A model generated the notes under the pieces. That model was not told the origin of the DNA and ran no database searches. It saw only the letters and a program-made list of their open reading frames with translations. This document shows positions 31,896-64,000 of a DNA stretch of 64,000 nucleotides, one piece after another (the first letter of the stretch is position 1; each line of letters starts with the position of its first letter). The translations under genes and the position numbers were made by a program. Source of the DNA: Macrostomum hystrix (lineage: Eukaryota; Animalia; Platyhelminthes). The stretch spans positions 1,922,001 to 1,986,000 of the forward strand of contig CATNEN010000041.1 of assembly GCA_950097015.1 (NCBI GenBank). The letters run 5' to 3'.

Positions 31896-34800
31896 TCAAG
31901 TAGCCAGGGGCAGCTGGAGGAGGCTGCAGTCCCTTGGCGAGTAGCCCACATTGTGCCGCTGCAGGAACAGGTGAATCTCGCTGAAGCGCGGCCGGCAGGC
32001 TTCGTCCCGCTGCCAGCACTCGCACAGCAGGTCGTAGAGCTCACGGGAGCACAGCGGCGGGCAGGGCAGCGCCTGGGCGGCACCGTTGCACAGCAGGATG
32101 TGCTGGCAGTTGGCCACCACCTGCGGGCCGGCGGCGGGAGGGTGTTGAGAATCTACCACCGCGGATTGCTTAATCTATTTCTATGGACTGCTAGTCTATT
32201 ACAAATGGATTGCTAATCTATTACAAATGGATTGCTAATCTATTACAAATGGATTGCTAATCTATTACAAATGGATTGCTAATCTATTACAAATGGATTG
32301 CTAATATTTGAAATATGAATTGCTAATATAGCCGTCGCTCGCTCACCTGCTGGTCGCTCAGGTGAGAGAATGGCTGCTCCCGGCAGAAGGTGAGCATCTC
32401 CCACAGCGTGACGGCGAAGCTCCAGACGTCGCTGCGGCAGGAGAAGCGGCCGTGCAGGACGGCCTCCCAGGCCATCCAGCGGATGGGCAGCGAGGCGCCG
32501 GAGCCGCCGTCAAGTCGGCAGTAGTCTGCCGAGTAGAGCGGCTGCGACATGCCGAAGTCGCAGATTTTCACCTGGTAGCCGGCGCCCAGCAGGCAGTTGC
32601 GACAGGCCAGGTCGCGATGCACCAGCTGCAGGGACTCCAGGTATTTCATGCCGCTGGCGATCTGCGCGGCAAGGTAGATCAGGCAGCCATGCGACAGCGG
32701 CGGCTCCGAGGAGCCGGTGGCAGCGGCTGCTGCAGCCCGGGAGCGCAGGAACTGGTGCAGGTCACCGTGCTGCATGTACTCAACCAGGATGCACTGCTGG
32801 GCGCCATCGCGCGTCACCACGCCCAGCACCCGGACGATGTTAGGATCCTGCAGCCGCGCCAGCAGCCGCATCTCGCGCCGGAAGTCGCGTCGGGCCTGCG
32901 GACCCGCGCCGGGTCGGAGGGTCTTCGCTGCCACCAGGAGGCGGCCGCCAGGAGAAACCCACTCGGCCAGCCGGACCTCGCCGAACTGTCCGCCTCCCAG
33001 GCGCTCCTTCAGCGCCACGGAGCCCGGCGCCACCTCCAGGGCGGCGAGTGAATCGGCGCTGACCGCAGGTTCCGAAGAGTCGCCGAGGTCATCGGCACCG
33101 CCGAGGATGCCGAAGTCGTCGGGACAGGCGTAGACCGTGTTGCCGGAGCAGCCTGTACAATGGCCAGGGAACGGGTCGGTCTCTTCGGTCCCTTCCCTTC
33201 TCTTAGAAAAAAAGTATAAAAATGGAGGACGGCACGATGGCTCTACTCAAAGTTGATGTTTTGCTATGAGACTCAGCTTGGTCTGGCGCTGCTCTCAGAA
33301 TTCGTATTCCAGAAGCTTCTAAGAAAGAAAATATTTCTTCTGCAACCTCAAAACGTGGTGTTTCTGGCGAGGCTGCGCAAGCGACAGTCCCGTGTTCAAC
33401 AAACCGATCGGCGAGCTTGCAGATTGGGAAGCGGACTATGGTGGGATTGGGGAATCGAAAACAGGCGTCAAAGTTGAGCTCGTCAAACCGAATGAGAACT
33501 GAAGTGAGAAGCAAGCGAACTCGAAGCTGCTCAGACCAATGAGGCTGGGGCTCCCAGCGTCCACTCGCTCACGCGCAGCTGCCCAGGGGAGAGTCTTCAG
33601 GAAGGTGTCGAAGTGAGACGGCTTGTTGGCGATGGGAGCTGATGAGGCGCCGGTCTGCCGGAGTCGAGAGGCCGGCCAAGTGGCCTCAGCAGCAGCAGCA
33701 GCAGCATAGAGCACGCGGGGCGGTGGTCGTGGGATTGCGCAACCGTGGGGAGATTATCCCAGCCCCTTCTCTGTCTGGCCTGGGCAGGAAGTGGTCCGCG
33801 CTGCCGACCTCCACCTGATGCGGCTGGGCCTTCGCCTTCAAGACTTTAATTAAGGTTGAGCATAGTCTCAAAGGGCTCGCACCTGCTCATCCCGGATGAG
33901 GCTCGGGTCAGGCAGATCAGAAGAATGATTGAAGGATACCTGCGAGCTGACCGGCATGCCATGATTGAGGCAGATTATTTGGGGGACACTGACTCACTCA
34001 GCTGAGCAGTGAGCCGTGACTCATTGACCTACTTGACACATTACCGCCCTGCTCTGTTAATAATAGTTAATAACGTCAGCCTTCCAATAATTGAGAGCGG
34101 AGGTGCCGCCGTACCTTGAATGCTCAGGTCCGATGGAAACCGAGGCACCGGCGGAGGCGACGAGTTGGAAGCGAAAGACGCAGCCGCCGCGGCAGTCCTG
34201 GGCAATCCGGGCAGGGCGGCGGTTCTCGACTGACGGCCGCCGCCCAGCTGAAGGTGGCCAGCGGACGGATCAACGGTGGCTGAGCACGCGTGGTGCCGGA
34301 GCTGATGGTGCGGCGGCTGCGGCTGCAGCGGGCCGGTGCCGGGCAGGAGGATCCGCGGCCTGGCGTAGGTGCCGAGCCCCGCCGCGTACAGCCCGCCGCC
34401 GTTCAGGCCGAAGGGTGGCGCCGCCAGCGGCTGCTGCTGCTGCGGGCCGTACAGGGTGGCGCTGGCGTACTCGCGTGCGGCTCCGCTGGGCATCGCCGGA
34501 GCGAACGGAGCGAAGGAAGCCGGGGCGTAGGTGTAGCAGTCGGGGCCGTTCAGGTCGGTGCGCTGGTCCTCCTCGTCCTCGGAATTGGGCAGGCTGGTGT
34601 AGATGCTACCGTTGGCCGGCTTGCCATTGACCACCATGGCTGGCCGGCCGCTGCTGAAGTCTAGGTGGATGCTCTCCGCGTTCTTCGCTTGCTGATGTAA
34701 TGAGCGGCCGCCCGCATCACCGCCCCGCTGCTTTTTGCGCAGGAGGCGCCGGCGAAGGCAGAGGAAGGCGATGGCCAGCATCAGCAGGACCGCGCCCAGC

Positions 34801-40800: not shown

Positions 40801-43800
40801 TTCCAATTAGGGCGGCCCGTGAATGACGCTGCTTTCTTTCTAAAATCCCAGTTCTCGCCACAATGAGCCCAGCGAGTTGAAAATGTCACGGCGAGTTCAG
40901 TCGGGGGGGGGGAGATCGGAGCCGCAGATTCCGCATGCGATTTTCCCCAATGCTTTGTCACGGAGCCGTGAGCATTGCTCAGGCCCGGCCGCTGAACGAG
41001 CCCCAGTGGAAATGCCGCGCCGGGCCCAAGTGTTGCAGAATTATCCCAGCGACCGAGGTGGGGAGAATGAACTGGCTGAGCTATCCCGCGGGACAGATTT
41101 TGGGGCTGATGAAGAGAGCCATCCGAACACAAAGAAGGCCTCTCTTCTCACTTTGCTGGAGGATTGTGAAAGGGAGATAAGCCCGAGATGATAGGCATTG
41201 CGGGGGCTCGGGGATGCAGTGTCTGAGTCATCCAGTGTGAGTTGCAGAGGCCCAGGTGAAGCATATGTTCGGCTCAGAGCAACAAGTGCCAGCGCAGCCT
41301 CTGTGCTCAACTCGAGTGCTGTGTTTGCTCAGGCGGTGCACGGCCGGGATTTGAGCAGACGCCCACCCCAGACATCAAGCCGCCCGCCATCCCTGCTGCA
41401 TTCCGGCCCGTCTGCTGCAGCAGGGTGCGGCGCGGGGCACCAGCGGACCGGCAAATCGCTGCCCGAATATCCCCAGGACTGGTCGGATTGATGGCTGGGG
41501 GAATAAATTATTCCGCAGCACACACTGCAGAGGTGCAGCCCGGCCTGATTCCGTATGCCACCGCATGCCCCACCCGCCCTGCACTGACAGCTGCCGCGTC
41601 TGGGAGCTCAAGCCGCCCGACTCGCTTGGGTTCGAGAGAGTTGGCTCGGAATGATGCCAGAGTGCCCCTGGCTGAGCCTCGATACATCTGCTTCCCGCAC
41701 CAGCATTCACCCACCCCGCCTTGTCATGCCACTCTGACTTGCGTCTGCCCGCCTCTGCGCTTGCCTCTACCTTATCCTCCCCCCCTTTCCTTGATCTCCC
41801 CTTGCCTCTCCCTTATCTTCCCTTTCCTCTCCCTTATCTTCCCTTTCCTCTCCCTTCTCGTCTCCCTCATAGGGTCAATAAGCCGTCTACTACGAGTGCA
41901 CAATTCTGCTTGCACAAAACAGATGGACCTGTCCCTCTGACACACCTAGTTTACTAAGTGTCCTCATTTAGGATTTAGTTTTGATCTCGAGTCATCAACA
42001 GTTCACAGGGCCTAATTATCCAGTTCTAGCAGCAATTTTAATTAGTAATTCGGGTGTCTAAAAAGCACTGATACACCGATCGCGAGGCCATAAACCTGAT
42101 TAACAGCTTGTCGCGAAGGCCACGTCAACACCTGACCCGCTCCGCGGCGATGCCTCACCTGACTCGAAGAACACCTCTGACAGCAGCATCCAGTTGCTTA
42201 TGGGGTGAAAGTGCAACTCCAGCCGCACGAATCGGCCCACCAGGCCCACAATGTCCAGGCGCAACGGCCGCGTGAACTGGTTGCTGTCGTCCGGAGGCAC
42301 CGCGGTCGCCACGCTGGCTGCGGTGAAGTAGCGGCCGCCCACGCTGGCCGAGGCCACCGCCCTGGAGAACAGGCGCGCGTCCCAGCTAGCGAAGTCGTTG
42401 TTCGTGTCGATGGTGACGCTGTGAAATCGACGCACGGCGTCGAACTCGAACTCGATGGTGACTGAGTCGCTGTTGAGCTGGCGCTTGTCCCAGCCCACGT
42501 AGCGCAGGCCGGCCAGGCCCTCGTCGTTCGGGTCGGTTCTGGGGGACACGCTGCTGCTGGTGTAGTCCGCCAGCTTTCCGAGCCCGCCGGTCAGCTGCCC
42601 ACGGACCACCCGGCCGTCGTAGAAGTGATCGGCGAAGTCGGCCTGGCCTCCGGCCGCGGAATGGCCCTGAGGCGCCGAGTAGGCCACGAGGCCCTGGTAG
42701 TCGGGGCAGCCAAACAGCTCGAACTTCAGGCACACATTGGTGTCCTTCTCGTCCGGGTTCAGTGGGAAGATTTTCACCTGCTTGGCCACCAGCGGCGGCT
42801 TCAAGGTGACGTAGTTTTTCTTGTCCTTCACATCCGTGTTGCCCTTGATGACCTGCGGCAATTCCAGGGAATCAAATTATGGATGGGAAATGGGATTCGG
42901 GACTTCATTTTTTGGGATCCTAAAATGGGGATCGCTTGTGTTCGGGTCTGGCTTTTTACTGGAGTTAGGACAAAGACCATTGACTTTCAGGTGACACGAA
43001 CTCAAAAAGGTAGTCTTGAAAAATACAAATATCCGCGTGCAAATTTCAGGAAAAAAAACTTCTGCAGTCATGACCCGGGCAGCAGGGAGTTCTCCCACGA
43101 GGGCTGGGAAGCACTAAGATCCCCAACAAGGTGGCCATGAGAGGCCAAATTTAGTAACTGCCAGGTAATGCGGCCTCACACGCGAAGTGCATCAGGAGTG
43201 CCAGGAGCCGACAGGGTCCGGACTGTGCAGTGGTCTGAGTTGGTGCGGCCATTGTTCTTTGCCCTCAGAGGTGAAAGTTGAGTGAGGAGATTAAACACTT
43301 AGGGAAAGGGTCGGGAAAGTTTGAAAGTGAGCGGATTCCCCAGTCTGAGGCCGCCAGGGAGCAAAAAGCGCGGGGCTCGAGCTTGGGATTTTGGAGGCGG
43401 AGCTGCCTATGGGAGGATTATCCCAGCCCGACCCCCAGAGTGCGTGGCCGCGGCGGATTAGGAGGCGGGTCCGAGCCGAGGCGCTTTTTCTTCTTTTTTC
43501 CCTTTTTCCTTAAAAATCCCCTCTAGGGAAGAGAAATGAATCACTATTTCTGCTCATGCGCTGAGCTGATCCCTTCCTGCTTTCTTCAGAAGCTTCAGAG
43601 CTGGGGCTGCGGGGCAGCACACTGTGTACGATCTCCTTTTAGAGGGGCGGGACTCTTCTTCCAGAGTCCCAACTCTTTGAGAAGCTTGAGTAGCCTCAGT
43701 ACTCGCTCGGGTCTATTTTGGGGCGTTGCGGACTTGTTTGGTCTCTCGGTTGTCGGGAAAACTTCCCATGGGCAGGTGGGACACGCCCCTGGCCGCGGTG

Positions 43801-46800: not shown

Positions 46801-49800
46801 ATCATGGGAAACCCGATCAGCAGCTGGCGGGAGAGAAGTGCAAGGAGACGCAGCTGGCTTTTGTCAGGCAGCAGCGCAGCATTTGGCTCATGTTTCTCCA
46901 CAGATTCCCAGCACTGGCTGCTCCACCCGCTCTCTCCCTCTCTATCCGACTTTTTCTACTCAGTGAAAAAATCTTCGCCGCATTGTGAGATGCGAACTGC
47001 AAATTGCAGTGCAAAACAAGCTTGCTGCAATTTCCAAATATGGAGTGTGACAAAAGTGGGGTCCATTTTTCTGTCTGAGCCAAGGCCTGCTCGACTCGCT
47101 GCCCGTGTTTGCAGAAGCCCAGCGTGTTTGCCTTCCTGGGCCTCGGATTTCCGGCCATAGACACTGGCCAGTCGGAGCCGCATTCCTGTGACTCACCGCT
47201 GAGTTATGATTGCAAAGCCTGGGGCGCCAGTGGCCCCGCTGTTAATGTGAGCGAAATTGGAAGGCAGAGCGACAAAACGGCCCCCTTCTGCGACGCGGAC
47301 TCGGCCGCGCACGCACGCGGGCCGCGAAATTGGATAAATCTGGGCGTTATGGAACAGGCCCGGGGGCGGGCACATCGAAAGTCGTGACGCACACAGGGAA
47401 CTGTGATGAAGGCACGGATGCAGTCTTGTTATTAGCCACCCGGGCTCCACCTTATTAAGACGCTTGCAGCTTCCGCGCCAACATTTGGCACAGCTGATTA
47501 ATCCCTGATAGGGGAAAATTATCGGCCACGGGCGCGGACTAATGAAAGGAGACAAAACTGTGTAAGGCCGGCAGGGGAACTGTGACTCAGCCCTGTCTCC
47601 TGACTGTAATTGAAGCTGAGGGGCCTAATGCAGGCTGCAAACACAACCCCACGGCCCAACTCTTTGTGGCCTCGGGTGATTGAGACCGCATGGACACACA
47701 TCAGGGACCTCGGTGATTGACAGCCCAGTGAACTCGACCCCCCAGCCTGTGTCATTTGTCAGCACCAGCCAGCCCAGCTATTTGATGCCACAGGTAGGCA
47801 GGTGATTAACGGGCATGCATTAAATCTGCAGTCTCCAGTTACCGGGCGGAGTTGGGAAGTGACCGCTGCGCACTAATGCATCCCTGATTGCTGTCTGGCC
47901 TCCTTGGGTTGAGCTGCGCGACACTTCTCGGGCATTAGGCGAGAATTCTCCTGCGGCATGGCGAGCCCTTTGTTCCCCGGCACTAATGGGTGAAGCTGCT
48001 GCGAGATCTCGGGCCATATTTTCTCCAGGTAAGTCCTATCAGTGAGGAAGTGCCAACCTGACCTGACCTCACCTTTCACACGGGGCCAAGCACGCTTTCT
48101 AGGCAATTCCCGCGCTATTTGGACAATCCCTCAGGCTTCATGGTTGGTCGTGTCAAGGAAGCGAAACAAGAACAACCGAAGATGATATTGCGGGCCGGCG
48201 CAGTTAGAGACAGCGCTTTGAAAAGCAAATATTACTCGGCAATGCACACCGCCCACTGCCAGGGACTCCCATGGGCGCTAGAGGCCAGGGGAGGCGGCCC
48301 CACAGGCGGCCCGGCTAAAAGCCGCCACGCAGGCGGGCCAGTTCCAGGTAGAAATATGACGCCATTAGTAGCTCCGCAGCAATGTCCCAGGAGCTAATCA
48401 ATCCCGCTGTGCGCCCGGGGCGACCGACCCGGCAGATCGGAATTGTTTATCCCTAAAATATCAGGCCTTTTCATCCCAATCTTGGGATATTTATCCCCTG
48501 TTTCTAACTCCTTTCAATTCATTTCGCTTAGTCTGCAGTTGAAAGGATAAATGGCTGCTTGGATGCAGGGACTGCGACGCGAGATTGATTCCGAATTCAC
48601 TTTGTGTGCCTCTTTTCAATTACGCATGCTGTTAGCGGCCCGTTTATCGTCTTCACAGAGCTCCTCGTTCCACTTGATAGGTTAGTCCTATCTGCCAGCA
48701 GGCCAAATTAATCTGGCTCGCCTCTTTCACTCGGACTGGCACTCCCTAGACCCAGCCCTGTCACTCGAACTGGCACTCCCTAGACCCAGCCCTGTCACTC
48801 GAACTGGCACTCCCTAGACCCAGCCCTGTCACTCGAACTAGCACTCCCTAGACCCAGCCCTGTCACTCGAACTGGCACTCCCTAGACCCAGCCCTGTCAC
48901 TCGAACTAGCACTCCCTAGACCCAGCCCTGTCACTCGAACTGCCATTCTCTAGACGCAGCCTTCAAATTGTCAGCCCGCCACTCACCGAGTCGGCGGTCT
49001 TGTGCTGCCTGGGCGCAGTGAGCAGGTTGTTGATAATCTTGAGCTCGGGAAAGGTGACCAGAATCCACTCGGACATTGTGTTCTGGCGCAGAGGCAGGTT
49101 GGGGCACCAAGCCTGGTCGTTCTGGTTGTCGGAGCCATCATTCGAAATCCTGAAAAGGGCAGTTTTAAAACTTGCATTTGAATTCAAGAAGAGCTGAGGA
49201 GGTCTTGGAAACGGCCACTGAATAGAAAGATGCTTTTTCAAAGCTCCAAGCAAAGACAACACGCGAAAGTCCAGGTGAAAATCCGCCCCTCTCCGCATCA
49301 CCTGTTCGACTCCCAGCATCCCCGCCCTCAAAGCAAGGAACAGACAGAGAGGAACAGGCTGAGAGGAACAGGCTGAGAGAGACAGGTCAGCTGCTCCCCG
49401 CGCAGCTGGGCGGGAAGCCCCCAAATCCCGCCGGTTTAACAGAGAGGAAAAACTGGGAGAAAGATCCCCAAAAGGGCTTCATTGGCAGGATATTTTTCGG
49501 CGAAAGTGTACCATTGTGCGAGACGGAATGGCCAGGGTGTCGGCTGATGCGATGAATGTCGGATTTCTATGAATTTCTAAGGAAGCAAATGGATTTGATA
49601 TGAAAAGCTATACTGTGGACTACTGACAGATCAGCAGGTGATGCTCTGACATTTTTCATCAAACCTGTCATAAAAAACTTCCCATGGCAGCTGCGCTGAG
49701 CCCTGCATTTCAGCATCATCATGGCGCATTGTGTATACAAGGGAGATTTGTCACGGGGAAAACAGGTTGCTGCCCAGTGTGAGTGAGTCACAGCTACCAG

Positions 49801-52800
49801 AGCTGCGCCGCCGAGCGGTGTTGCCATGCCGGTTTGTGGGGCCAATGTGGCAGGCAAGTTATTTTTATTGTTTATTGCAAACTGCAAACAAAGCATCAGC
49901 AGCTTTGAACTGCGAGCTGCCCTGTTGTGGCATACTTTGGGAGGCCGGGCGTGGGCGCCGAGACAGGAGTGGCGCGGTTTCGTGACAGTCCCACTGCTGT
50001 TCAAGTCAGGGCAGACCGAGCACCCCCTGGGGACTTGTTTGAGGTCGAGGTTCGTCTCGGGCCTGAATTTCATGCCCTGAATGACGCAGATTGAATTCAT
50101 GTCGAACAATGTTATCGGGAGTTGGCGCACAATGCCCCGCGCTCGTCTGGCATTCTCAGCTTCGAGCCAATGGGCAATAAAAGCTGCTAGCATGCTGTGC
50201 CCAGCTGAGAGTGAAAGTAGAGATACTAAGGCAGGCGAAAGCAACGAGGTCCGCTTCATCATGAAGAAGGAAAGGGAGAGAGAGAGGGTGAAAGAGGGGG
50301 AGAGAGGTGGAAAGAGAGGAAGAGAGAGGGTAAAAGAGGGGGAGAGAGAGGGTGAAAGAGGGGAGAGAGAGGGTGAAAGAGAGAGGGAGAGAGAGGGTGA
50401 AAGAGAGAGGGAGAGAGGGAGAGAGAGAGCGGGAGAGAGGAGAGAGGACACTGCAACATTGAATTTAAAAAATCTAATGTTGGAATCGATTCCGATATGT
50501 ATCCAAAAAATTGAAATCCGGATTCGAACCAAGGCAACTCCAGACGCGTTTCGCTCTTGTTGGAGCTCATCAGTAGAGTCTAGCCTAACGTTTTAGCCAT
50601 TCGTCTATGGGCGCTTGTTCAAATCCAGCTTTCAACCTCAACATATCGTAATCGATTCGGCAGCGCCCCGCAACTCAATCCATACTCACTAAACTCCGTG
50701 GCACTGACTCGGTCGTACGAGACGCCGGTGCTGGCCTGGAGCAGAGGGGAAAAGAGGGGGGGAGAGGGTGAAAGAGGGGGAGAGAGAGGGTGAAAGAGGG
50801 AGAGAGGGTGAAATAGGGGGAGAGAGGCAGCAGAGACATGTGAGGCACAAGCAGAGGTACGGCACACAGAAAGGACAAAGACGGAGATTCCCGCAGCTGC
50901 AGCAGCCAGCCAGCCAAGTGCCAGTAGGCGGGGCGGCTCTTCCCAGCTTGGGGGGCCTGGCAGAAGGCGGCGTAGGACAAGGCGGAGACCGGCAGGCAGA
51001 TTGAGGCCAGATGCGGCGGGCTGCGGACTCTCAGGCCTCGGGCCCATCCCGCTAATGCAGTGGGGACAGGCAAACAAGAGCGCTTATCAGGCCAGAGTCA
51101 ATAGACCAGGGCGGCGCGGACCCGAGGATGTCTGATTGATGAGATGCAGATTCTCAATCTGGGCCTGGAGTCCCAGCAAGCCACAGCAGCACTGCCTGGC
51201 TGCTGGAGTAGTCTGCAGTCTGCCCACTCTAACACAAACTGCAGCTGCGGATTAACTATGTATTAACTAAACTGCAGCTGCACAGTTCCTGCCACCCTCC
51301 AGATTCTATGCTGCACAGTTCCTGCCACCCTCCAGATTCTATGCTGCACAGTTCCTGCCACCCTCCAGATTCTATGCTGCACAGTTCCTGCCACCCTCCA
51401 GATTCTATGCTGCACAGTTCCTGCCACCCTCCAGATTCTATGCTGCACAGTTCCTGCCACCCTCCAGATTCTATGCTGCACAGTTCCTGCCACCCTCCAG
51501 ATTCTATGCTGCACAGTTCCTGCCACCCTCCAGACTACAGGCTATACACCTGGCATTCTCCGCATTCTCCGACTGCCACCCTCAAGCCTTGCACTCTGGC
51601 AGACTCTTTGTTTATCAAGAGGCACTCCAATAATTTGTCTTAATCCACCTGTAGGAAGTGCTTGCACAGAGTTTTAAGCCCCTAGATTTCCACCTGCGCG
51701 CCAAGCAACATGGCCCCAGCTACTCACTTGGCCTGTGAGGCGTTGAACTGGCTGTAGTGCGAGCTGCTGTTGAACCTGGAGTCGTCAAGTCGCTGCACCA
51801 GCCGCAGCGGCTTCTGCGAGTTCTTGCAGTCAAAGTCGGACTCGCGGCCTGCGGAGCGGGGGTGGCGGTCAAAGGTTTTTGTCTCTGGGCTAGCTCATTA
51901 ATTATGCATGCGCTGAGTTGTGCAAGGCATGTTTTCCAGCCTAATTTCATAAGCTATTATGCATTTCATTTTCATCTGGTTGAGTGAGCAGGCGGGCCCA
52001 CTTTCTCTTCGGAGGTGTCATTTGCATGAGCAGAGCGCCTCGGGCCACAATTGCATTTTCGAAGCTGTGGCACGACTTTACCCTCCCCCCCCGGCCTCGG
52101 CAACTGGGCACCTGAGAGCGCACCTAGTTGTGGCTCCGGCCAGGTGTAGCCAGGTGAAACTGGGCCCGCAAATCAGCGCAGCGGCCGCCAATAATTCACT
52201 GGCGGGCCTGCTGAAGTCGCAGCCGGATAGGAAATCGGCGGCATGCTGGGATCAGCTGGGATCTGCTGCTGGCCCAGTTAAAAGTCTCTCCCGGCTGAAG
52301 TGCGGGCACCCGACCCAGAATCGGGCCAGGCGGGCCAGACAGCACAATGGCTGGGCAGAGAGCACCGCGGAAACGAGACAGGGGGTGCAGGGAATTTCTC
52401 TAGGGTGCACACCGTTTGAGTTGGGGGTCGCAACTCAAAAACAAAACCCAAAACTTTGAAGGCCAATTCTAAAACCGAATCGTAAATTCACCAGCAGCGG
52501 GTCGGAGCTTCAGAACTCAGAAGCCGCACTGCAAACCCGAAACGATATTAAATTACGATTTATTATTTTGTTTAGTTCGAATTGCGAGAACAGGAAAACA
52601 AGTGTTTAATATGGGAACGGTGGGATAATTGCAATGATCCACAATCCTCTTGATGGCCTCACAAAAAAAGCAAAACTGGCATTCTTCCAAAATGCGCTGC
52701 TGCAGTGGGCCGGGTCTGAGACCATCCACGGAGAACAGTGCAGGTAAGGGGCCGTGCTTGATTGGGATCCTACCTGTGCTCTATCGGGTATTGCATGTTC

Positions 52801-59120: not shown

Positions 59121-59884
59121 GGCAAAGTCAAGCTGGCCTTGGGCTCTCGCACTGCTCGCTACTCGCTACTGTCGAGTAAGCTGCGCGCGCAGATTGAAAC
59201 CAAATGAAGCCAAGTGCTTTCTCCCCTGATCATTAACAAAACTGCCTGCCTGCTCTGTTGATCCTCAGTTGGGAGAAAGGGGCATACAGTCACATTCAGG
59301 CAGGCACACAGTCTAGTTGAGGGCTGGGGCGGGGAGAATTTCTCATTTCCCCTGTAGGAGCGTGCCGGGCGGGACTTTTTCAGCGGTCGAAATTGATTTC
59401 CCACCGCGGCCCGGCCCGCATAATGTGCGCTTGAAAGGGAAAGTGGAGCGTGGATTTGGGGGAGGTTAGAGAAGCACAGAAAAACAGGGATCTCAGGGCA
59501 GGGCTGAGTTAAAGTGAAAAAGCAGGACTGGTTTGTGTGACAGACAATAGCGTGTTGTTTCTTTCCTGTGCGCTGCCAGGTGAACTTGCTTCGATCCCAC
59601 TGCGGCTCGCTAGCAAGCTTATCGCCTTCCCAGCTCCTCAGCCAGGCGAGGATCAGCCGGCCTTTTTAAAATTGAGCCAAAATTCAAACACTGCGAATTG
59701 ACGGAAATGAAATCCGCGGCACTGGGCCCTGGTCGGCTCGGAACCGCCTCGACAGGCTCCACTTTTCCTCTCAACTCCGATCCATTCCTTTCAGTCTCTG
59801 ATCTTTTTAATACCCTTCGGTTACTCCTCTTCTCCTATCCTATCTTCTCCTCCCTGTCTCCTGTCTCCTGTCTCTTCTCTCCCA

Positions 59885-60715
59885 TCTCCTCTCAACCATC
59901 TCCTTAACCATCTCCTCTCAACCATCTCCTTAACCATCTCCTCTTAACCATCTCCTCTCAACCATCTCCTTAACCATCTCCTCTTAACCATCTCCTCTCA
60001 ACCATCTCCTCTCAACCATCTCCTTAACCATCTCCTCTTAACCATCTCCTCTCAACCATCTCCTCTCAACCATCTCCTTAACCATCTCCTCTTAACCATC
60101 TCCTCTTAACCATCTCCTCTCAACCATCTCCTTAACCATCTCCTCTTAACCATCTACTCTCAACCATCTCCTCTCAACCATCTCCTTAACCATCTCCTCT
60201 TAACCATCTCCTCTTAACCATCTCCTCTCAACCATCTCCTTAACCATCTCCTCTTAACCATCTCCTCTCAACCATCTCCTCTCAACCATCTCCTTAATCA
60301 TCTCCTCTTAACCATCTCCTCTCAACCATCTCCTCTCAACCATCTCCTTAACCATCTCCTCTTAACCATCTCCTCTTAACCATCTCCTCTCAACCATCTC
60401 CTTAACCATCTCCTCTTAACCATCTACTCTCAACCATCTCCTCTCAACCATCTCCTTAACCATCTCCTCTTAACCATCTCCTCTTAACCATCTCCTCTCA
60501 ACCATCTCCTTAACCATCTCCTCTTAACCATCTCCTCTCAACCATCTCCTCTCAACCATCTCCTTAACCATCTCCTCTTAACCATCTCCTCTCAACCATC
60601 TCCTCTCAACCATCTCCTTAACCATCTCCTCTTAACCATCTCCTCTCAACCATCTCCTCTCAACCATCTCCTTAACCATCTCCTCTTAACCATCTACTCT
60701 CAACCATCTCCTTCC
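59885..60715. repeat. 13-16-bp CT-rich minisatellite
   Basis: Units AACCATCTCCTCTC, AACCATCTCCTT and AACCATCTCCTCTT interleaved. Confidence 0.92.
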
Positions 60716-61384
60716 TCTAACCTCCTCTCTCCCATTCTATCTCGCGATCTCGTCTCTCCATCGCCCCCTTCCAAGTTCCCTATCATCTCTATTATCTGGC
60801 CTCTCTATGGTGCTCCCCAAGAAATTTCCCTTCGCATATTAATATTTGTTGTCGCAATCCCTGATGCCAGCATTTCAGGTCCCCGAAAACAATATTTTAA
60901 AGTGTGCCAGCGATTGACCCTGAAAGGCTCGCTCTACTCCAGCCGTGTTTTCCTGATCCGCATTCCATGTTCGCCATCATTTTCCACAGAGGCGCCAGCG
61001 GTTTTCGCCAGGTGCGCAAATCCACATTAAAAATTGGCTACAAAATTACGGAATCCGGCTAAATCGGCCATTGATTATTTCTGTTCTCTCTGCGGATCTG
61101 CGCAAATTAACTTGAAAACCACCAGGAACCGAAGAAAGCTACTTGAATCTTACCTGATCATCACTTCAATTACTTGAAGAAGCCTTGGGCCTAACAATAC
61201 TAAACGATACACTCTTCAAATTGACCTTGAAGTGGAGCTCTAAACTCGAACTAAACTTGCACCGCCAACAGCTGCCAACGCCCCAGCATACTACTGACAG
61301 CAGTAGAAAGTAGACATTTCCCATTTGAAACACCAGTTTCCGTTTCCATAAATGCCTTAGAATTTAGTGCGCCGAATTCGTCAG

Positions 61385-62015
61385 TCGCGAATCCATGAGT
61401 CGCCGAATCCATGAGTCGCCGAATCCATGAGTCGCCGAATCCATGAGTCGCCGAATCCATGAGTCGCCGAATCCATGAGTCGCCGAATCCATGAGTCGCC
61501 GAATCCATGAGTCGCCGAATTCGTGAGTCGCCGAATTCGTGAGTCGCCGAATTCATGAGTCGCCGAATTCGTGAGTCGCCGAATCCATGAGTCGCCGAAT
61601 CCATGAGTCCCCGAATTCATGAGTCGCCGAATCCATGAGTCGCCGAATTCATGAGTCGCCGAATCCATGAGTCCCCGAATTCGTCAGTCACCGAATCCAT
61701 GAGTCGCCGAATTCGTCAGTCACCGAATCCATGAATCGCTGAATCCATGGGTTGCCGAATTCGTCAGTCGCCGAATCCATGAGTCGCCGAATCCATGAGT
61801 CGCCGAATCCATGAGTCGCCGAATCCATGAGTCGCCGAATCCATGAGTCGCCGAATCCATGAGTCGCCGAATCCATGAGTCGCCGAATCCATGAGTCGCC
61901 GAATCCATGAGTCGCCGAATCCATGAGTCGCCGAATCCATGAGTCGCCGAATCCATGAGTCGCCGAATCCATGAGTCCCCGAATTCATGATTCGCCGAAT
62001 TCGCGAGTCGCCGAA
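61385..62015. repeat. 16-bp CpG-rich minisatellite, about 39 copies
   Basis: Unit GAGTCGCCGAAT(C/T)C(A/G)T. Confidence 0.95.
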
Positions 62016-62638
62016 TTCAGATTCGACCAGTTCGGGAGCCGCTAAATTGCTGAGTCGGAAAGTGGATTGCTGAGTGGATTAGCTCCCTGGTTTTCAGGAA
62101 AAAATTAAAAACCGATTTAAGCATTTTGCAGCTACTCACAGTAGGCAGGGCGAAGTCGGCGAAATTTCGACTCACCGAGAGGCAAAAACTTTTGACTTTA
62201 TTCAGTCTGCAGTTCCAGAGCCACGGCTAGGGCACACAGTGAGTGTACATTTCAGAGTCTTCTTGGCTTGGCGGGTTTAATTGCCGTAAATTTTATCCAG
62301 CTCAGGGACAGAGAGATGAGGCTGGCCATGCGGCTGCTGTGCAGTTCGCAATGCAGTTTTTAGTTTAATTCGGACTGCATTTGTGAGAATAGAGAGAGTA
62401 CGCTGCCAAGCTCAAAACCCACCCACCGAATCGAGCGCCGCCCGTGCTGCCCGAGTGCTCAGCCCCCCTGCCCGTCTCTTTCGTCTCTCCTACCGCTTTG
62501 AGTCAGCTCAAGCTTATGCCCAAATGGAGAACTCATCGCAATGGCGTCTATTTCGTATTTCAGTGAGCGCCTCGCGTGAGTTTGGCCGCACCGAGTGGAC
62601 AGCTCTTCCCCCAGCAAGCAAACAGCACCGGCTCCGTC

Positions 62639-63550
62639 ATGCAGCGGGATGTGGACAACTTCCGTGGTCAGTTTTCGGTGAGTGTACAAGCATTGCTGAG
62701 TTAATTAGTCCGAGTCTCTCCAGACTGCCTGCACTGCGAACTCCCCGCCATTGCAGAGTCTGGTTCGGAACATCGAGGACCGAGTCGACGATCTGGTTGC
62801 CCAGACCAAAGTGGACCGGCAGCTCAAACAGCTCAACCAGCAGGAGACAGCGGCTGAATGGTCCGACAAACAGGTAGCACGGCGTAACACCTTGAGGCCA
62901 CCACCCTGACTGATCCTTCAGTGCATCAGCTACCATCCTGACTGATCCTTCAGTGCATCAGCCACCACCCTGACTGATCCTTCAGTGCATCAGCCACCAT
63001 CCTGACTGATCCTTCAGTGCATCAGCCACCACCCTGACTGATCCTTCCGTGCATCAGCCACCACCCTGACTGATCCTTCAGTGCATCAGCCACCACCCTG
63101 ACTGATCCTTCAGTGCATCAGCCACCACCCTGACTGATCCTTCCGTGCATCAGCCACCACCCTGACTGATCCTTCCGTGCATCAGCCACCACCCTGACTG
63201 ATCCTTCAGTGCTACTACCACCCTGACAGCCAGCCTCCCCACATGCCGGCATTTCAGAACTCGCTGTCCGCCCTTAAGTCCGACTGGCAGCGAGTGAAGA
63301 ACCTGGCCAAGTGCCTGGACAGGCAGATGGAGCACCAGTCCAATTATCACCTGGTGAGGCAGGCTGTGAGTAGAGTAAGTGGAATCCAGAGTTCTCACTG
63401 AACCAATGCACTTCTCCGCAGTTCTACCAGACCCTGAAGGAGTACCAGACCAGCCTGGAGGCGTCATTCGCGACTTTCAGGGCGGGTCTGACTGGAAAAC
63501 AGTTCTCAGGCACCAAGGACGAGGCCAAGTGGCTGTTCGATAAGATGCAG
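62639..63550 (+). CDS. Partial plakin-family / spectrin-repeat cytolinker gene (continues beyond the window)
   Basis: Four phase-0 exons: 62639(or 62615)-62677, 62757-62873, 63210-63353, 63422-63550. Translation ...LNQQETAAEWSDKQ|CYYHPDSQPPHMPAFQNSLSALKSDWQRVKNLAKCLDRQMEHQSNYHL|FYQTLKEYQ... resembles by eye the plectin/desmoplakin plakin-domain pattern (WSDRN...HP...ALQTQWSW...AYFQFF). Confidence 0.6.
62898..63228. repeat. 32-bp tandem repeat overlapping a splice acceptor of the plakin-like gene
   Basis: Unit CCACCACCCTGACTGATCCTTC(A/C)GTGCATCAG, 9 full copies plus a terminal copy that forms the acceptor at 63209. Confidence 0.92.
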
Positions 63551-64000
63551 GTGAGATTAAGAGGCCAAATAAAAATATTAATGATTGCAGGAGGGCTGCG
63601 GACAAAGCCATACCATCTGGTGAGACTAGACCTGCAGCCAGCGAGAAGGTCAATTATTCCCATTTCGCCGACTCCTGAGCACACACGCACACAGATACTG
63701 TACGCAGGCATCGCTCACACGGGTGTGTACATCTCACTGTGTACATCTGCCCTGACTTTCTATTCGTTAGGCAGTGCACACTTCACTGTGCCTTGGAGGT
63801 TGGCCCTCAAGGACGTAAATTGCACGACTATCCCCCCAAGCCTTCTCTCCGCAGCTGCGCCCCAAATGAATGTGGCCTCGCCGTTGAATCGAGCTCATGG
63901 ACCTTGGTGCGAGTGGCAAACACGTTACTGCTCTGCCACTCACCCCTACTGAAAATATAAGCTCCAAAATTAGCTTCGCTTTTTGTAAACCAACAACGCA

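Follow-up and report, generated by a model that had tools for sequence, protein, structure and literature searches.

A hammerhead ribozyme motif in a DDR intron of Macrostomum hystrix is probably the ribozyme of a retrozyme-like repeat

The 64-kb stretch of Macrostomum hystrix DNA that we analysed (the window) contains a type I hammerhead ribozyme motif on its minus strand, in an intron of a DDR (receptor kinase) gene and in sense orientation. We consider it probable that this motif comes from a non-coding retroelement of the retrozyme or Sm-alpha-like kind, being the ribozyme of a solitary and relatively old copy. The copy in the DDR intron is most likely inert transposon debris and not a gene switch.

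Structure and gene context of the hammerhead motif

The original prediction described a full catalytic core, a 4-bp stem II with a CAACAA loop, the palindrome ACGCGU and a GUC cleavage triplet, and all of these were found on the minus strand where it had placed them. The parts of the motif are as follows.

50532..50586, minus strand: type I hammerhead ribozyme motif (sequence; Rfam HH9 match; 31-nt core repeated genome-wide)
50586-50574, minus strand: stem I, 5' strand
50573-50567, minus strand: CUGAUGA core
50566-50553, minus strand: stem II and its loop (GCUC, 50566-50563, with GAGC, 50556-50553; 4 bp; loop CAACAA)
50552-50549, minus strand: GAAA core
50549-50544, minus strand: palindrome ACGCGU
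50544 and 50543, minus strand: U16.1 and C17 of the GUC, with the predicted cut at 50543/50542
50542-50532, minus strand: stem I, 3' strand

Stem I, put at about 11 bp in the prediction, indeed comprises 7 + 4 bp: an inner part of 7 bp, including two G.U pairs (50574-50580 with 50542-50536), and an outer part of 4 bp (50583-50586 with 50535-50532), separated by a 2-nt bulge (50581-50582). The intronic motif has the conserved hammerhead core CUGANGA...GAAA...UH at the three-way junction. Helices I and II are formed, with 94% of the cells paired over 20 family copies, and helix I is open-ended, as in type I.

The motif was assessed as hammerhead type I of Rfam clan CL00010. When the whole window was scanned against all 4227 Rfam families, the sole match with E <= 1 was Hammerhead_HH9 (50520-50591, minus strand; 37.2 bits, E 8.5e-6), and the same match on 501 nt had an E of 6.6e-8. 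At the gathering threshold the window gave no match, since HH9 has a gathering score of 52 bits. The covariance-model check was therefore positive by E value but fell under the gathering score; the shortfall is due to the missing helix III, and near-consensus copies of the same family scored 38.7-42.1 bits. A generic hammerhead pattern had one match in the window against 0.04 expected, and together with the Rfam scan at E <= 1 this bore out the claim that the window contains no other hammerhead.

That the motif resembles the hammerhead consensus by chance, without descent from a ribozyme, could be argued from the score under the gathering threshold and from the MFE z-score, which was just -0.58 for the 63-nt motif by itself. 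We regard it as extremely improbable in view of the E value reached against 4227 families, of the pattern expectation of 0.04 per window, and of the presence of all core nucleotides in the canonical geometry (helix I of 6-7 bp, helix II of 4 bp; PMC4209133). The motif is also kept in about 88 genomic copies, compared with 0 for a reversed-pattern control.

Four exons of the gene were located around the motif.

51728..51848, minus strand: DDR exon 2, start of the discoidin domain (...DFDCKNSQKPLRLVQRLDDSRFNSSSHY...); acceptor ...CCGCAG/, donor AA/GTGAGTA
48986..49149, minus strand: DDR exon 3, discoidin domain (...ISNDGSDNQNDQAWCPN...); acceptor TTTTCAG/, donor /GTGAGT
42100..42861, minus strand: DDR exon, end of the discoidin domain and DS-like domain (Pfam PF21114 DDR1-2_DS-like, E 2.8e-36)
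32323-33033, minus strand: kinase-domain exon (PF07714, E 6e-65)

The DS-like exon fixed both the identity of the gene as DDR and its strand. Exon 2 was collinear with two paralogue loci in a tblastx comparison (37-44% identity over 45-51 aa), and its splice phase fits the next exon. Exon 3 gave a weak Pfam F5_F8_type_C match (profile positions 19-62) and was 50-54% identical to three paralogues. The repeat with the hammerhead lies between these two exons, in sense orientation. Its assignment to DDR intron 2, on the pre-mRNA strand, accordingly holds for the intronic and sense position, which follows from the flanking exons identified through paralogues; the number of the intron is plausible. 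The paralogous DDR genes have short introns at the corresponding place, and the element is absent from them.

A word-based protein search with the DS-like exon gave no match. Two discoidin ORFs that were tried as DDR paralogues proved to encode another protein, which matched nothing useful in the window. Pattern searches for the discoidin N-terminus found none, the exon being found later by tblastx against the true DDR paralogues. An ORF with an ATG and a signal-peptide-like start, 3' of the element (50262 onward), was ruled out as exon 1 by the presence of exon 2 upstream of it (51848-51728).

The repeat family that carries the motif

The hammerhead is part of a repeat of about 560 bp (~50826-50263) with many copies in the genome, which had been missed in the original prediction. 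A genome-wide search for the 31-nt core, allowing up to 2 mismatches, yielded at least 88 copies (40 forward and 48 reverse) and none with the reversed pattern. Partial tandems, with a period of 300-337 bp, occur among them. Forty full-length copies shared 93-95% identity. In the window, the repeat has the following parts.

50746..50826, minus strand: CT-rich tract 5' of the core, present in 20/20 aligned copies
50455..50745, minus strand: unique repeat core, ~290 nt, with two arms predicted to pair into a long imperfect hairpin or rod
50263..50454, minus strand: CT-rich minisatellite tail, unit ~22 nt (Tandem Repeats Finder, 50278-50440, period 22)
50597..50607, minus strand: A-box-like motif (family majority TAGCCTAATGG; TAGACGAATGG in the DDR-intron copy, decayed at the conserved C)
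50520..50530, minus strand: B-box-like motif GGTTCGAATCC (sequence, alignment, folds)

Column conservation in the core was 0.86-1.0 among 20 aligned copies. The CT-rich tail is common to the family copies but variable in length, and forms a long polypyrimidine tract on the pre-mRNA strand. The most fitting reading of the tract at 50746..50826 is that it stems from an upstream copy of which the tail alone is left; this matches the partial tandems found at other loci. At 7 of the 40 scored loci, the upstream tract runs into a 5'-truncated copy that has the same 3' end point, the period being 322-337 bp. Among other arrays, periods of 300, 486 or 503 bp were seen, as were units parted by an expanded CT-rich satellite. 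Arrays were observed at loci C25, C11, C30 and C38; tandem arrangement is therefore a property of the family but not of the DDR locus, where the copy is solitary.

The core (50455..50745) had a predicted folding energy of -115.2 kcal/mol (z -3.1). The 336-nt unit of a tandem copy, taken from cut to cut, was predicted to form a rod of -120.3 kcal/mol (z -4.4), and none of 100 shuffled sequences folded as well. The GC content was 48.8% for this unit and 46.7% for the core in the window, compared with 50.5% for the whole window. As to compensatory stem changes among related copies, no pair was altered on both sides in 20 copies, a result identical to that of shuffles. With a looser genome-wide pattern that admitted variant stems, 77 of 77 matches had one and the same stem II. 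The absence of covariation is explained by the family being too young to be informative, and structural support accordingly comes from the Rfam model and the canonical core.

When the 1.5 kb around 20 family copies was inspected, neither an ORF of normal composition nor a Penelope-like ORF (RT + GIY-YIG) was present. Searches with GIY-YIG, RVT_1 and Lipase_GDSL_2 did not reveal the reverse transcriptase that would mobilise the family. The four GIY-YIG matches of the genome, considered as a Penelope-like partner, corresponded to a 1.1-kb repeat devoid of RT and hammerhead. Among the best 150 RVT_1 matches that were scored, no open frame contained both RT and GIY-YIG. The Lipase_GDSL_2 profile gave three unrelated matches.

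The two box-like motifs flank the hammerhead, and a T6 run (50510-50505) follows the B-box-like motif at a distance of 9 nt (10 nt in most other copies). The majority sequence TAGCCTAATGG fits TRGCNNANNGG and GGTTCGAATCC fits GGTTCGANNCC; moreover, SMalpha-type elements have been termed SINE-like (PMC2770079, PMC8490949). On these grounds, the ~110 nt bounded by the A-box-like motif and T6, with the hammerhead and the B-box-like motif in between, could be an independent Pol III gene for a small self-cleaving tRNA-like RNA, at the DDR locus as elsewhere. This seems very unlikely to us. The DDR-intron copy departs from the majority at 50604 and 50602, inside the A-box-like motif, and at the nearby positions 50593, 50591 and 50588; these five changes are private to it and include the conserved C. 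No tRNA was recognised by ARAGORN or by the Rfam tRNA model in the window or in six near-consensus copies, even at E <= 10. As the boxes lie ~140 nt inside the unit, a transcript ending at T6 could not hold the whole element. Finally, the B-box-like stretch pairs with an upstream GGATTTGAAC in the predicted rod, which would be a structural reason for its conservation.

Helix III, dimer dependence and the copy in the DDR intron

Helix III of the intronic copy consists of a single A-U pair, or at most of A-U + C-G (1-2 bp), with a palindromic loop, and the C-G pair within ACGCGU would need an impossible 2-nt loop. The intronic motif therefore lacks a helix III that closes the junction within one molecule. 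A single-pair helix III around a palindromic loop rules out a stable monomeric active fold, and with 1-2 bp cutting should depend on a dimer. In the predicted double hammerhead, ACGCGU gives a 6-bp intermolecular duplex. The fold of this dimer was predicted at -39.1 kcal/mol, versus -33.8 kcal/mol for two monomers, a gain of ~5 kcal/mol that corresponds to a dissociation constant near 0.1 mM. On these predicted energies, the gain would be too small to sustain pairing in trans at the concentrations that RNAs reach in cells.

Metazoan type I hammerheads with a helix I of 6 bp, a helix II of 4 bp and a helix III of 1-2 bp with a palindromic loop act as dimers (PMC4209133), and those of amphibian non-LTR retrozymes, with a single-pair helix III and a palindromic tetraloop, cut efficiently solely as dimers (PMC7229834). 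The original prediction was right in calling the motif a type I hammerhead whose palindromic helix III is very short and in linking this architecture to retroelements, since it is the one described for dimer-acting metazoan retroelement hammerheads (PMC4209133, PMC7229834). By analogy, the intronic hammerhead appears to be this known dimer-type variant.

Of 285 positions in the DDR-intron copy, 15 (5.3%) deviated from the family majority, compared with 0-1% for most copies, and the copy grouped with a more diverged subgroup that has the CAACAA loop. This divergence points to an older, relatively old member of the family. Its hammerhead is intact and the remainder of the copy has 14 changes (Poisson P ~0.2). 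The intactness of the 55-nt motif is thus compatible with chance while leaving room for constraint, and the sequence of the copy bears no sign of selection. No partner hammerhead was found in the 64-kb window by the pattern and Rfam scans, and the nearest other copies on the contig, among those listed, are more than 1.2 Mb away. Target-site duplications could not be defined because both ends of the copy are CT-rich.

It had been proposed that the intronic hammerhead acts on the DDR pre-mRNA, having been co-opted to cut the nascent transcript and to tune its splicing or abundance, perhaps only when paired with a second copy. Such a role has been proposed for the intronic hammerheads of amniote RECK, CTCL and DTNB and for the CPEB3 ribozyme, and intronic ribozymes have precedents (PMC6155905, PMC10919898). 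The motif is indeed intronic and sense, its core and both stems are intact although the remainder of the copy is 5% diverged, its stem II and loop 2 are near-identical to the Rfam HH9 consensus, and family RNAs with identical stems might pair with it in trans. However, the motif shares the genome with near-identical copies, at least 88 in all, and is not a unique conserved site; its helix III has 1-2 bp where HH9 has a 3-bp stem and a 5-nt loop. Furthermore, the window holds no partner and the other copies listed for the contig are distant, the dimer gain is small, the intactness of the motif is not statistically unusual, and the short introns of the paralogous DDR genes are without the element. 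We therefore could not uphold an action on the DDR pre-mRNA, and rate it as very unlikely. Still more improbable, in our opinion, is that the intronic copy is silent alone and is switched on in trans by abundant unit-length family RNAs, which have an identical stem I and ACGCGU and would form a double hammerhead with it. If this were true, bursts of retroelement RNA would cut DDR and other transcripts with sense copies, and would thereby act as a transposon-RNA-dependent brake.

The reading that we favour, a solitary copy of a non-coding retroelement, leads to the following scheme, in which dimer cleavage, circularisation and reverse transcription are inferred from the literature. In transcripts of two or more units, two hammerheads would form a double hammerhead via the ACGCGU palindrome, and a cut after GUC in each unit would release a monomer of ~336 nt. 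This monomer is predicted to fold as a rod, would probably be circularised by tRNA ligase, and would be reverse-transcribed into DNA by an enzyme provided in trans. The resulting insertions would comprise one unit and part of the previous unit, each with a CT-rich tail at its end. As to the DDR-intron copy, it would be expected to be passively transcribed, to cut poorly or never, and to leave with the spliced intron.

Relation to known elements and significance

The features of the family match those of metazoan non-LTR retrozymes and of Sm-alpha SINE-like elements. Non-LTR retrozymes are tandem repeats of 150-450 bp whose GC content is below 50% and from which self-paired circRNAs of 170-400 nt arise (PMC7229834). 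The family likewise has a non-coding unit in the 150-450-bp range with one type I hammerhead and without LTR, PBS or PPT, a GC content below 50%, and a monomer predicted to be stable and highly self-paired. Among these retrozymes (Cervera and de la Pena 2020, PMC7229834), the closest are amphibian satellite-2 and axolotl HHR_Amex1, which share with the family the non-coding unit of ~330 bp with its type I hammerhead, the occurrence of dimers or multimers beside dispersed monomers, the low GC content and the self-paired predicted RNA. As in the amphibian retrozymes, helix III has 1-2 pairs and a palindromic loop, and two copies would be needed for efficient cutting. Unlike non-LTR retrozymes, the family copies are mostly solitary or 'one and a bit' rather than in long arrays, the unit has a CT-rich minisatellite at its end that varies in length, and the hammerhead lies between tRNA-promoter-like boxes.

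A type I hammerhead is also carried by SMalpha, a SINE-like element of 335 bp (PMC8490949). Compared by description, the schistosome Sm-alpha and Sj-alpha elements (Ferbeyre 1998, via PMC2770079, PMC8490949) resemble the family in their unit of ~335 bp, dispersed and in tandem, and in their type I hammerhead, whose helix II has 4 bp and whose loop 2 is of the CAAxxA type. The family differs from them in its copy number, which is ~10^2 rather than 10^4. In Sm-alpha, the promoter boxes lie upstream of the ribozyme rather than on both sides of it, as the box-like motifs of the family do.

Retrozymes have been proposed to be non-autonomous derivatives of Penelope-like elements, whose pseudo-LTR hammerheads share the palindromic minimal helix III (PMC4209133; bioRxiv 10.64898/2026.07.22.740005). 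The partial-tandem insertions, in which a full copy is preceded by a 5'-truncated one, are also like those of Penelope-like elements. In contrast to the latter, no RT/GIY-YIG ORF was found between or beside the family copies, 20 of which were inspected over 1.5 kb, and the geometry of helices I and II is that of 'canonical' metazoan hammerheads rather than that of the Penelope-like min-HHR, with its long helix II.

The best Rfam match of the intronic motif is to HH9, and stem II and loop 2 are near the HH9 consensus GCUCCAAxAAGAGC. Like the amniote HH9/HH10 hammerheads of RECK, CTCL and DTNB (Rfam RF02275), the motif is intronic and sense to its host gene. HH9, however, has a stable helix III (3 bp, 5-nt loop) and is single-copy and deeply conserved, whereas the intronic motif is without a monomeric helix III, scored 37 bits for a threshold of 52, and is one of ~88 repeat copies. 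It thus shares the intronic, sense position of domesticated hammerheads but neither their single-copy status nor their monomeric helix III. Among the retrozymes of Xenopus, about 43% of the copies are intronic (bioRxiv 10.64898/2026.07.22.740005).

The single DDR locus is of small importance in itself, and indicates that a textbook-perfect ribozyme motif in a gene can be ordinary transposon cargo. The family adds a retrozyme-like element with three rarer traits, which are the flanking tRNA-promoter-like boxes, the (predicted) rod-shaped 336-nt unit and the CT-rich minisatellite tail. With its compact genome of 220 Mb, this animal would be a handy system for testing how hammerheads that depend on dimers work together with circular RNAs and with trans-acting reverse transcription, and the sense intronic copy is a natural test case for whether solitary dimer-type hammerheads ever cut host pre-mRNAs.

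The hammerhead motif and the intron that holds it

The minus strand at 50586-50532 contains, in order, the stem I 5' strand, CUGAUGA, GCUC-CAACAA-GAGC, GAAA, CGCGUC and the stem I 3' strand. This confirmed that the motif is real and lies where the original prediction had placed it, and the coordinates of the full core, the GUC triplet and the palindromic stem III all agreed. Stem I, which had been put at about 11 bp, comprises 7 pairs adjoining the core (2 of them G.U) and, after a 2-base bulge, 4 further pairs.

Elements of the hammerhead read from the sequence
50573-50567, minus strand: CUGAUGA
50552-50549, minus strand: GAAA
50549-50544, minus strand: palindrome ACGCGU
50543, minus strand: C17, with predicted cleavage between 50543 and 50542

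A generic hammerhead pattern matched once in the 64-kb window (0.04 expected). Rfam gave nothing in the window at gathering thresholds; at E <= 1, with 4227 families and the whole 64 kb, the sole match was Hammerhead_HH9 (50520-50591, minus strand; 37.2 bits, E 8.5e-6). The covariance-model hit is thus significant but below the gathering score of 52, because the helix III of the model (3 bp and a 5-nt loop) is deleted in the window motif. Stem II with loop 2 nearly reproduces the HH9 consensus. No second hammerhead was found in the window by pattern searches or by Rfam at E <= 1, as the original prediction had stated.

The motif had been assigned to intron 2 of DDR, a discoidin-domain receptor kinase gene, on the pre-mRNA strand. 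DDR exons were searched singly, and the upstream region of the gene was compared by tblastx with those of its paralogues. Collinear conserved coding blocks were found at 51870-51718, 49133-48984, 44428-44312 and from 42897 onward.

DDR exons
51848-51728, minus strand: start of discoidin domain (tblastx block, CAG acceptor, AA/GTGAGTA donor)
49149-48986, minus strand: next exon, after TTTTCAG and before GTGAGT (weak Pfam discoidin match, profile positions 19-62)
42100-42861, minus strand: exon with DS-like domain (Pfam, E 2.8e-36)
32323-33033, minus strand: kinase exon (Pfam, E 6e-65)

The GTGA of the first donor gives an in-frame stop at the same place in all three genes compared, and the splice phase agrees, two bases of the upstream exon and one of the downstream exon making AAG. 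The hammerhead-bearing element therefore lies wholly, and in sense orientation, within the intron 51727-49150 (2578 nt). The number 2 is plausible; exon 51848-51728 starts at an acceptor, so one or more exons must precede it. The equivalent intron measures about 305 and 655 nt in two paralogues, and that of the window is enlarged by the element and by a perfect 33-nt minisatellite upstream of it (51277-51534; 7.8 copies, 100% matches). Four more minisatellites lie in DDR introns or the upstream region (48727-48961, 59882-60712, 61370-62016 and 62897-63227; periods 34, 54, 16 and 32 nt; up to 40 copies), the first beginning about 25 nt past the donor of exon 49149-48986.

Besides the window, three further DS-like loci are present in the genome (C31:1815627, C39:15657227-15657859 and C9:1540945 of assembly G000), with exon boundaries conserved in the discoidin region; the C39 locus has an in-frame TGA within the DS-like match. 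A segment of about 270 nt (63652-63922) is conserved far upstream of the C31 paralogue (L037) in several frames, with stops present, which makes it a repeat common to both regions or else a conserved non-coding element.

A dispersed repeat family with partial tandems

A 251-nt query around the motif gave 119 first-look candidates in the 220-Mb assembly; 40 full-length matches on many contigs were scored (93-95% identity). The original prediction had proposed a check of copy number and tandem arrangement, and both were evident: a 31-nt core, with up to 2 mismatches, occurs at least 88 times in the genome (40 forward, 48 reverse; the reversed-pattern control gave 0 matches), and a 5'-truncated copy precedes 7 of the 40 scored copies. 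Alignment of 20 copies with their flanks resolved three zones.

Zones of the window copy
50826-50746, minus strand: CT-rich tract 5' of the core, similar to the 3' minisatellite
about 50745-50455, minus strand: conserved unique core
50454-50263, minus strand: CT-rich minisatellite 3' of the core, variable in length, unit about 22 nt (alignment and tandem repeats)

No ORF of normal composition was found within 1.5 kb of 20 copies. The preceding truncated copies have a common 3' end point, with a period of 322-337 bp, and their truncation points vary from query position 88 to 191, three of them falling where the hammerhead begins on its 5' side and one coinciding with the predicted cleavage site. 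In solitary copies, the window copy among them, the CT-rich tract on the 5' side is therefore best read as a truncated upstream copy of which only the putative tail remains. At other loci, paired units are spaced by 300, 486 or 503 bp, and one locus (L021:4285-9260; G000:C38:21523284-21528259) has five intact hammerhead units whose spacers, alternating between about 0.5 and 1.45 kb, consist of a 10-nt CT-rich satellite that has expanded (GAGAGTGAGG when read on the plus strand). The tail can thus expand to kilobase arrays.

Two junctions stood out. A 5'-truncated copy at G000:C38:31509127-31509212 begins at precisely the predicted cleavage site; at L024:2733-2883 the CT-rich tail is joined directly to CUGAUGA, its CUCUA taking the place of the stem I strand. 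These suggest that the template was switched at CTCT microhomology or that cleaved RNA was reverse-transcribed. In the window, the tail (50263-50454, with 50255-50262 adjoining) gives the pre-mRNA strand about 190 nt of polypyrimidine, followed within about 10 nt by AG and then by an ATG-initiated ORF resembling a signal peptide (MMKRTSLLSPALVSLLSLSAG...). The insertion may thereby have made a cryptic 3' splice site or a point of exonisation.

The partial-tandem, 5'-truncated structure is common to this family, to Penelope-like elements, for which it has been described, and to retrozymes, for which it has been proposed (PMC4209133; bioRxiv 10.64898/2026.07.22.740005). Searches for GIY-YIG, RVT_1 and esterase domains did not identify the mobilising enzyme: the best 150 RVT_1 matches scored have unclassified open frames of about 350-2050 aa, none overlapping the GIY-YIG loci, and the esterase-domain matches gave nothing useful. 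The four GIY-YIG matches in the genome represent a 1.1-kb repeat with neither RT nor hammerhead. It shows 94-96% identity and inverted terminal similarity (L028:916-2059, L029:1006-2089 and L030:916-2082, on C33, C3 and C7); its only ORF (270-313 aa) has a C-terminal GIY-YIG domain, and it is an unusual endonuclease-only mobile element.

Fold, pairing and tRNA-like boxes

The 336-nt unit between predicted cleavage sites of a natural dimer (48.8% GC) folds into a long rod (-120.3 kcal/mol, z -4.4; none of 100 shuffles as good). In this predicted rod, stem I closes one end, the arms flanking the ribozyme pair together, and a G/A/U-rich stretch is the partner of the CT-rich tail. The fold is retained in the window copy (-115.2 kcal/mol, z -3.1).

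Within one molecule, helix III is reduced to A-U, because a further C-G pair could be closed only by a 2-nt loop, which is sterically impossible. When two hammerheads join, their ACGCGU palindromes pair over 6 bp, and this double hammerhead was evaluated at -39.1 kcal/mol against -33.8 for two monomers. The difference, about 5 kcal/mol in favour of the dimer, is equivalent to a dissociation constant near 0.1 mM. Pairing in cis is therefore plausible, and cellular RNA levels make it implausible in trans; the nearest same-contig copies among the matches listed, two in number, are more than 1.2 Mb away. The proposal that the ribozyme acts perhaps only when two copies pair through the palindrome agrees with a dimer; pairing in trans is not supported. 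Metazoan type I hammerheads combine a 6-bp helix I and a 4-bp helix II with a helix III of just 1-2 bp, closed by a small palindromic loop; they are inactive singly and become active in tandem transcripts, as dimers (PMC4209133). Amphibian retrozymes, with a single-pair helix III and a palindromic tetraloop, cut well only in dimeric constructs (PMC7229834). The window helix III agrees with both descriptions, and by this analogy and the modelled energies its ribozyme would be dimer-dependent.

In the family majority an A-box-like TAGCCTAATGG precedes the hammerhead by about 30 nt and a B-box-like GGTTCGAATCC stands directly behind it, with a T6 run 9 bases further in the window copy and 10 in most others. 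These motifs would fit a current Pol III unit, which may hold for the family but is unlikely for the window copy. Several observations weaken it: ARAGORN and Rfam, even at E <= 10, found no tRNA in the window copy or near-consensus copies, the boxes begin some 140 nt into the unit, the element would not fit into a transcript stopping at T6, and the B-box-like stretch is base-paired in the predicted rod. A tRNA/SINE ancestry is likely.

Age of the window copy and its probable fate

Of 285 core positions, 15 (5.3%) in the window copy depart from the family majority; most copies depart from it at 0-3. The few other CAACAA-loop copies, which have some variants in common with the window copy (loop-2 C, G at 50519, T at 50467), are more diverged, or truncated, as well. 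The window copy is therefore one of the older members of the family. Five of the 15 differences are grouped in the A-box-like region. Only one, in loop 2, falls in the 55-nt hammerhead, against about 2.9 expected (Poisson P ~0.2), which gives no evidence of selection on the hammerhead. Compensatory stem changes, whose absence the original prediction would have held against the ribozyme, were not found across 20 copies (stems 94% paired, observed values equal to shuffles), and a looser pattern gave 77 matches, all with one stem II. Because the family is too young, this does not count against the structure.

New here are the assignment to an intron, the unit's rod fold, the series of truncations and the energetic argument against trans activation. 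The suggestion that the hammerhead could cut DDR pre-mRNA is not supported, the copy being solitary and its ribozyme probably dimer-dependent, with a pairing gain too small for trans; a role in DDR regulation is unlikely, and nothing found here supports it. Copies of such elements often lie in introns; in Xenopus the share is about 43% (bioRxiv 10.64898/2026.07.22.740005). The window motif belongs to a solitary, older member of a retrozyme/Sm-alpha-like repeat family, and this copy would most likely be transcribed passively and then removed with the intron.
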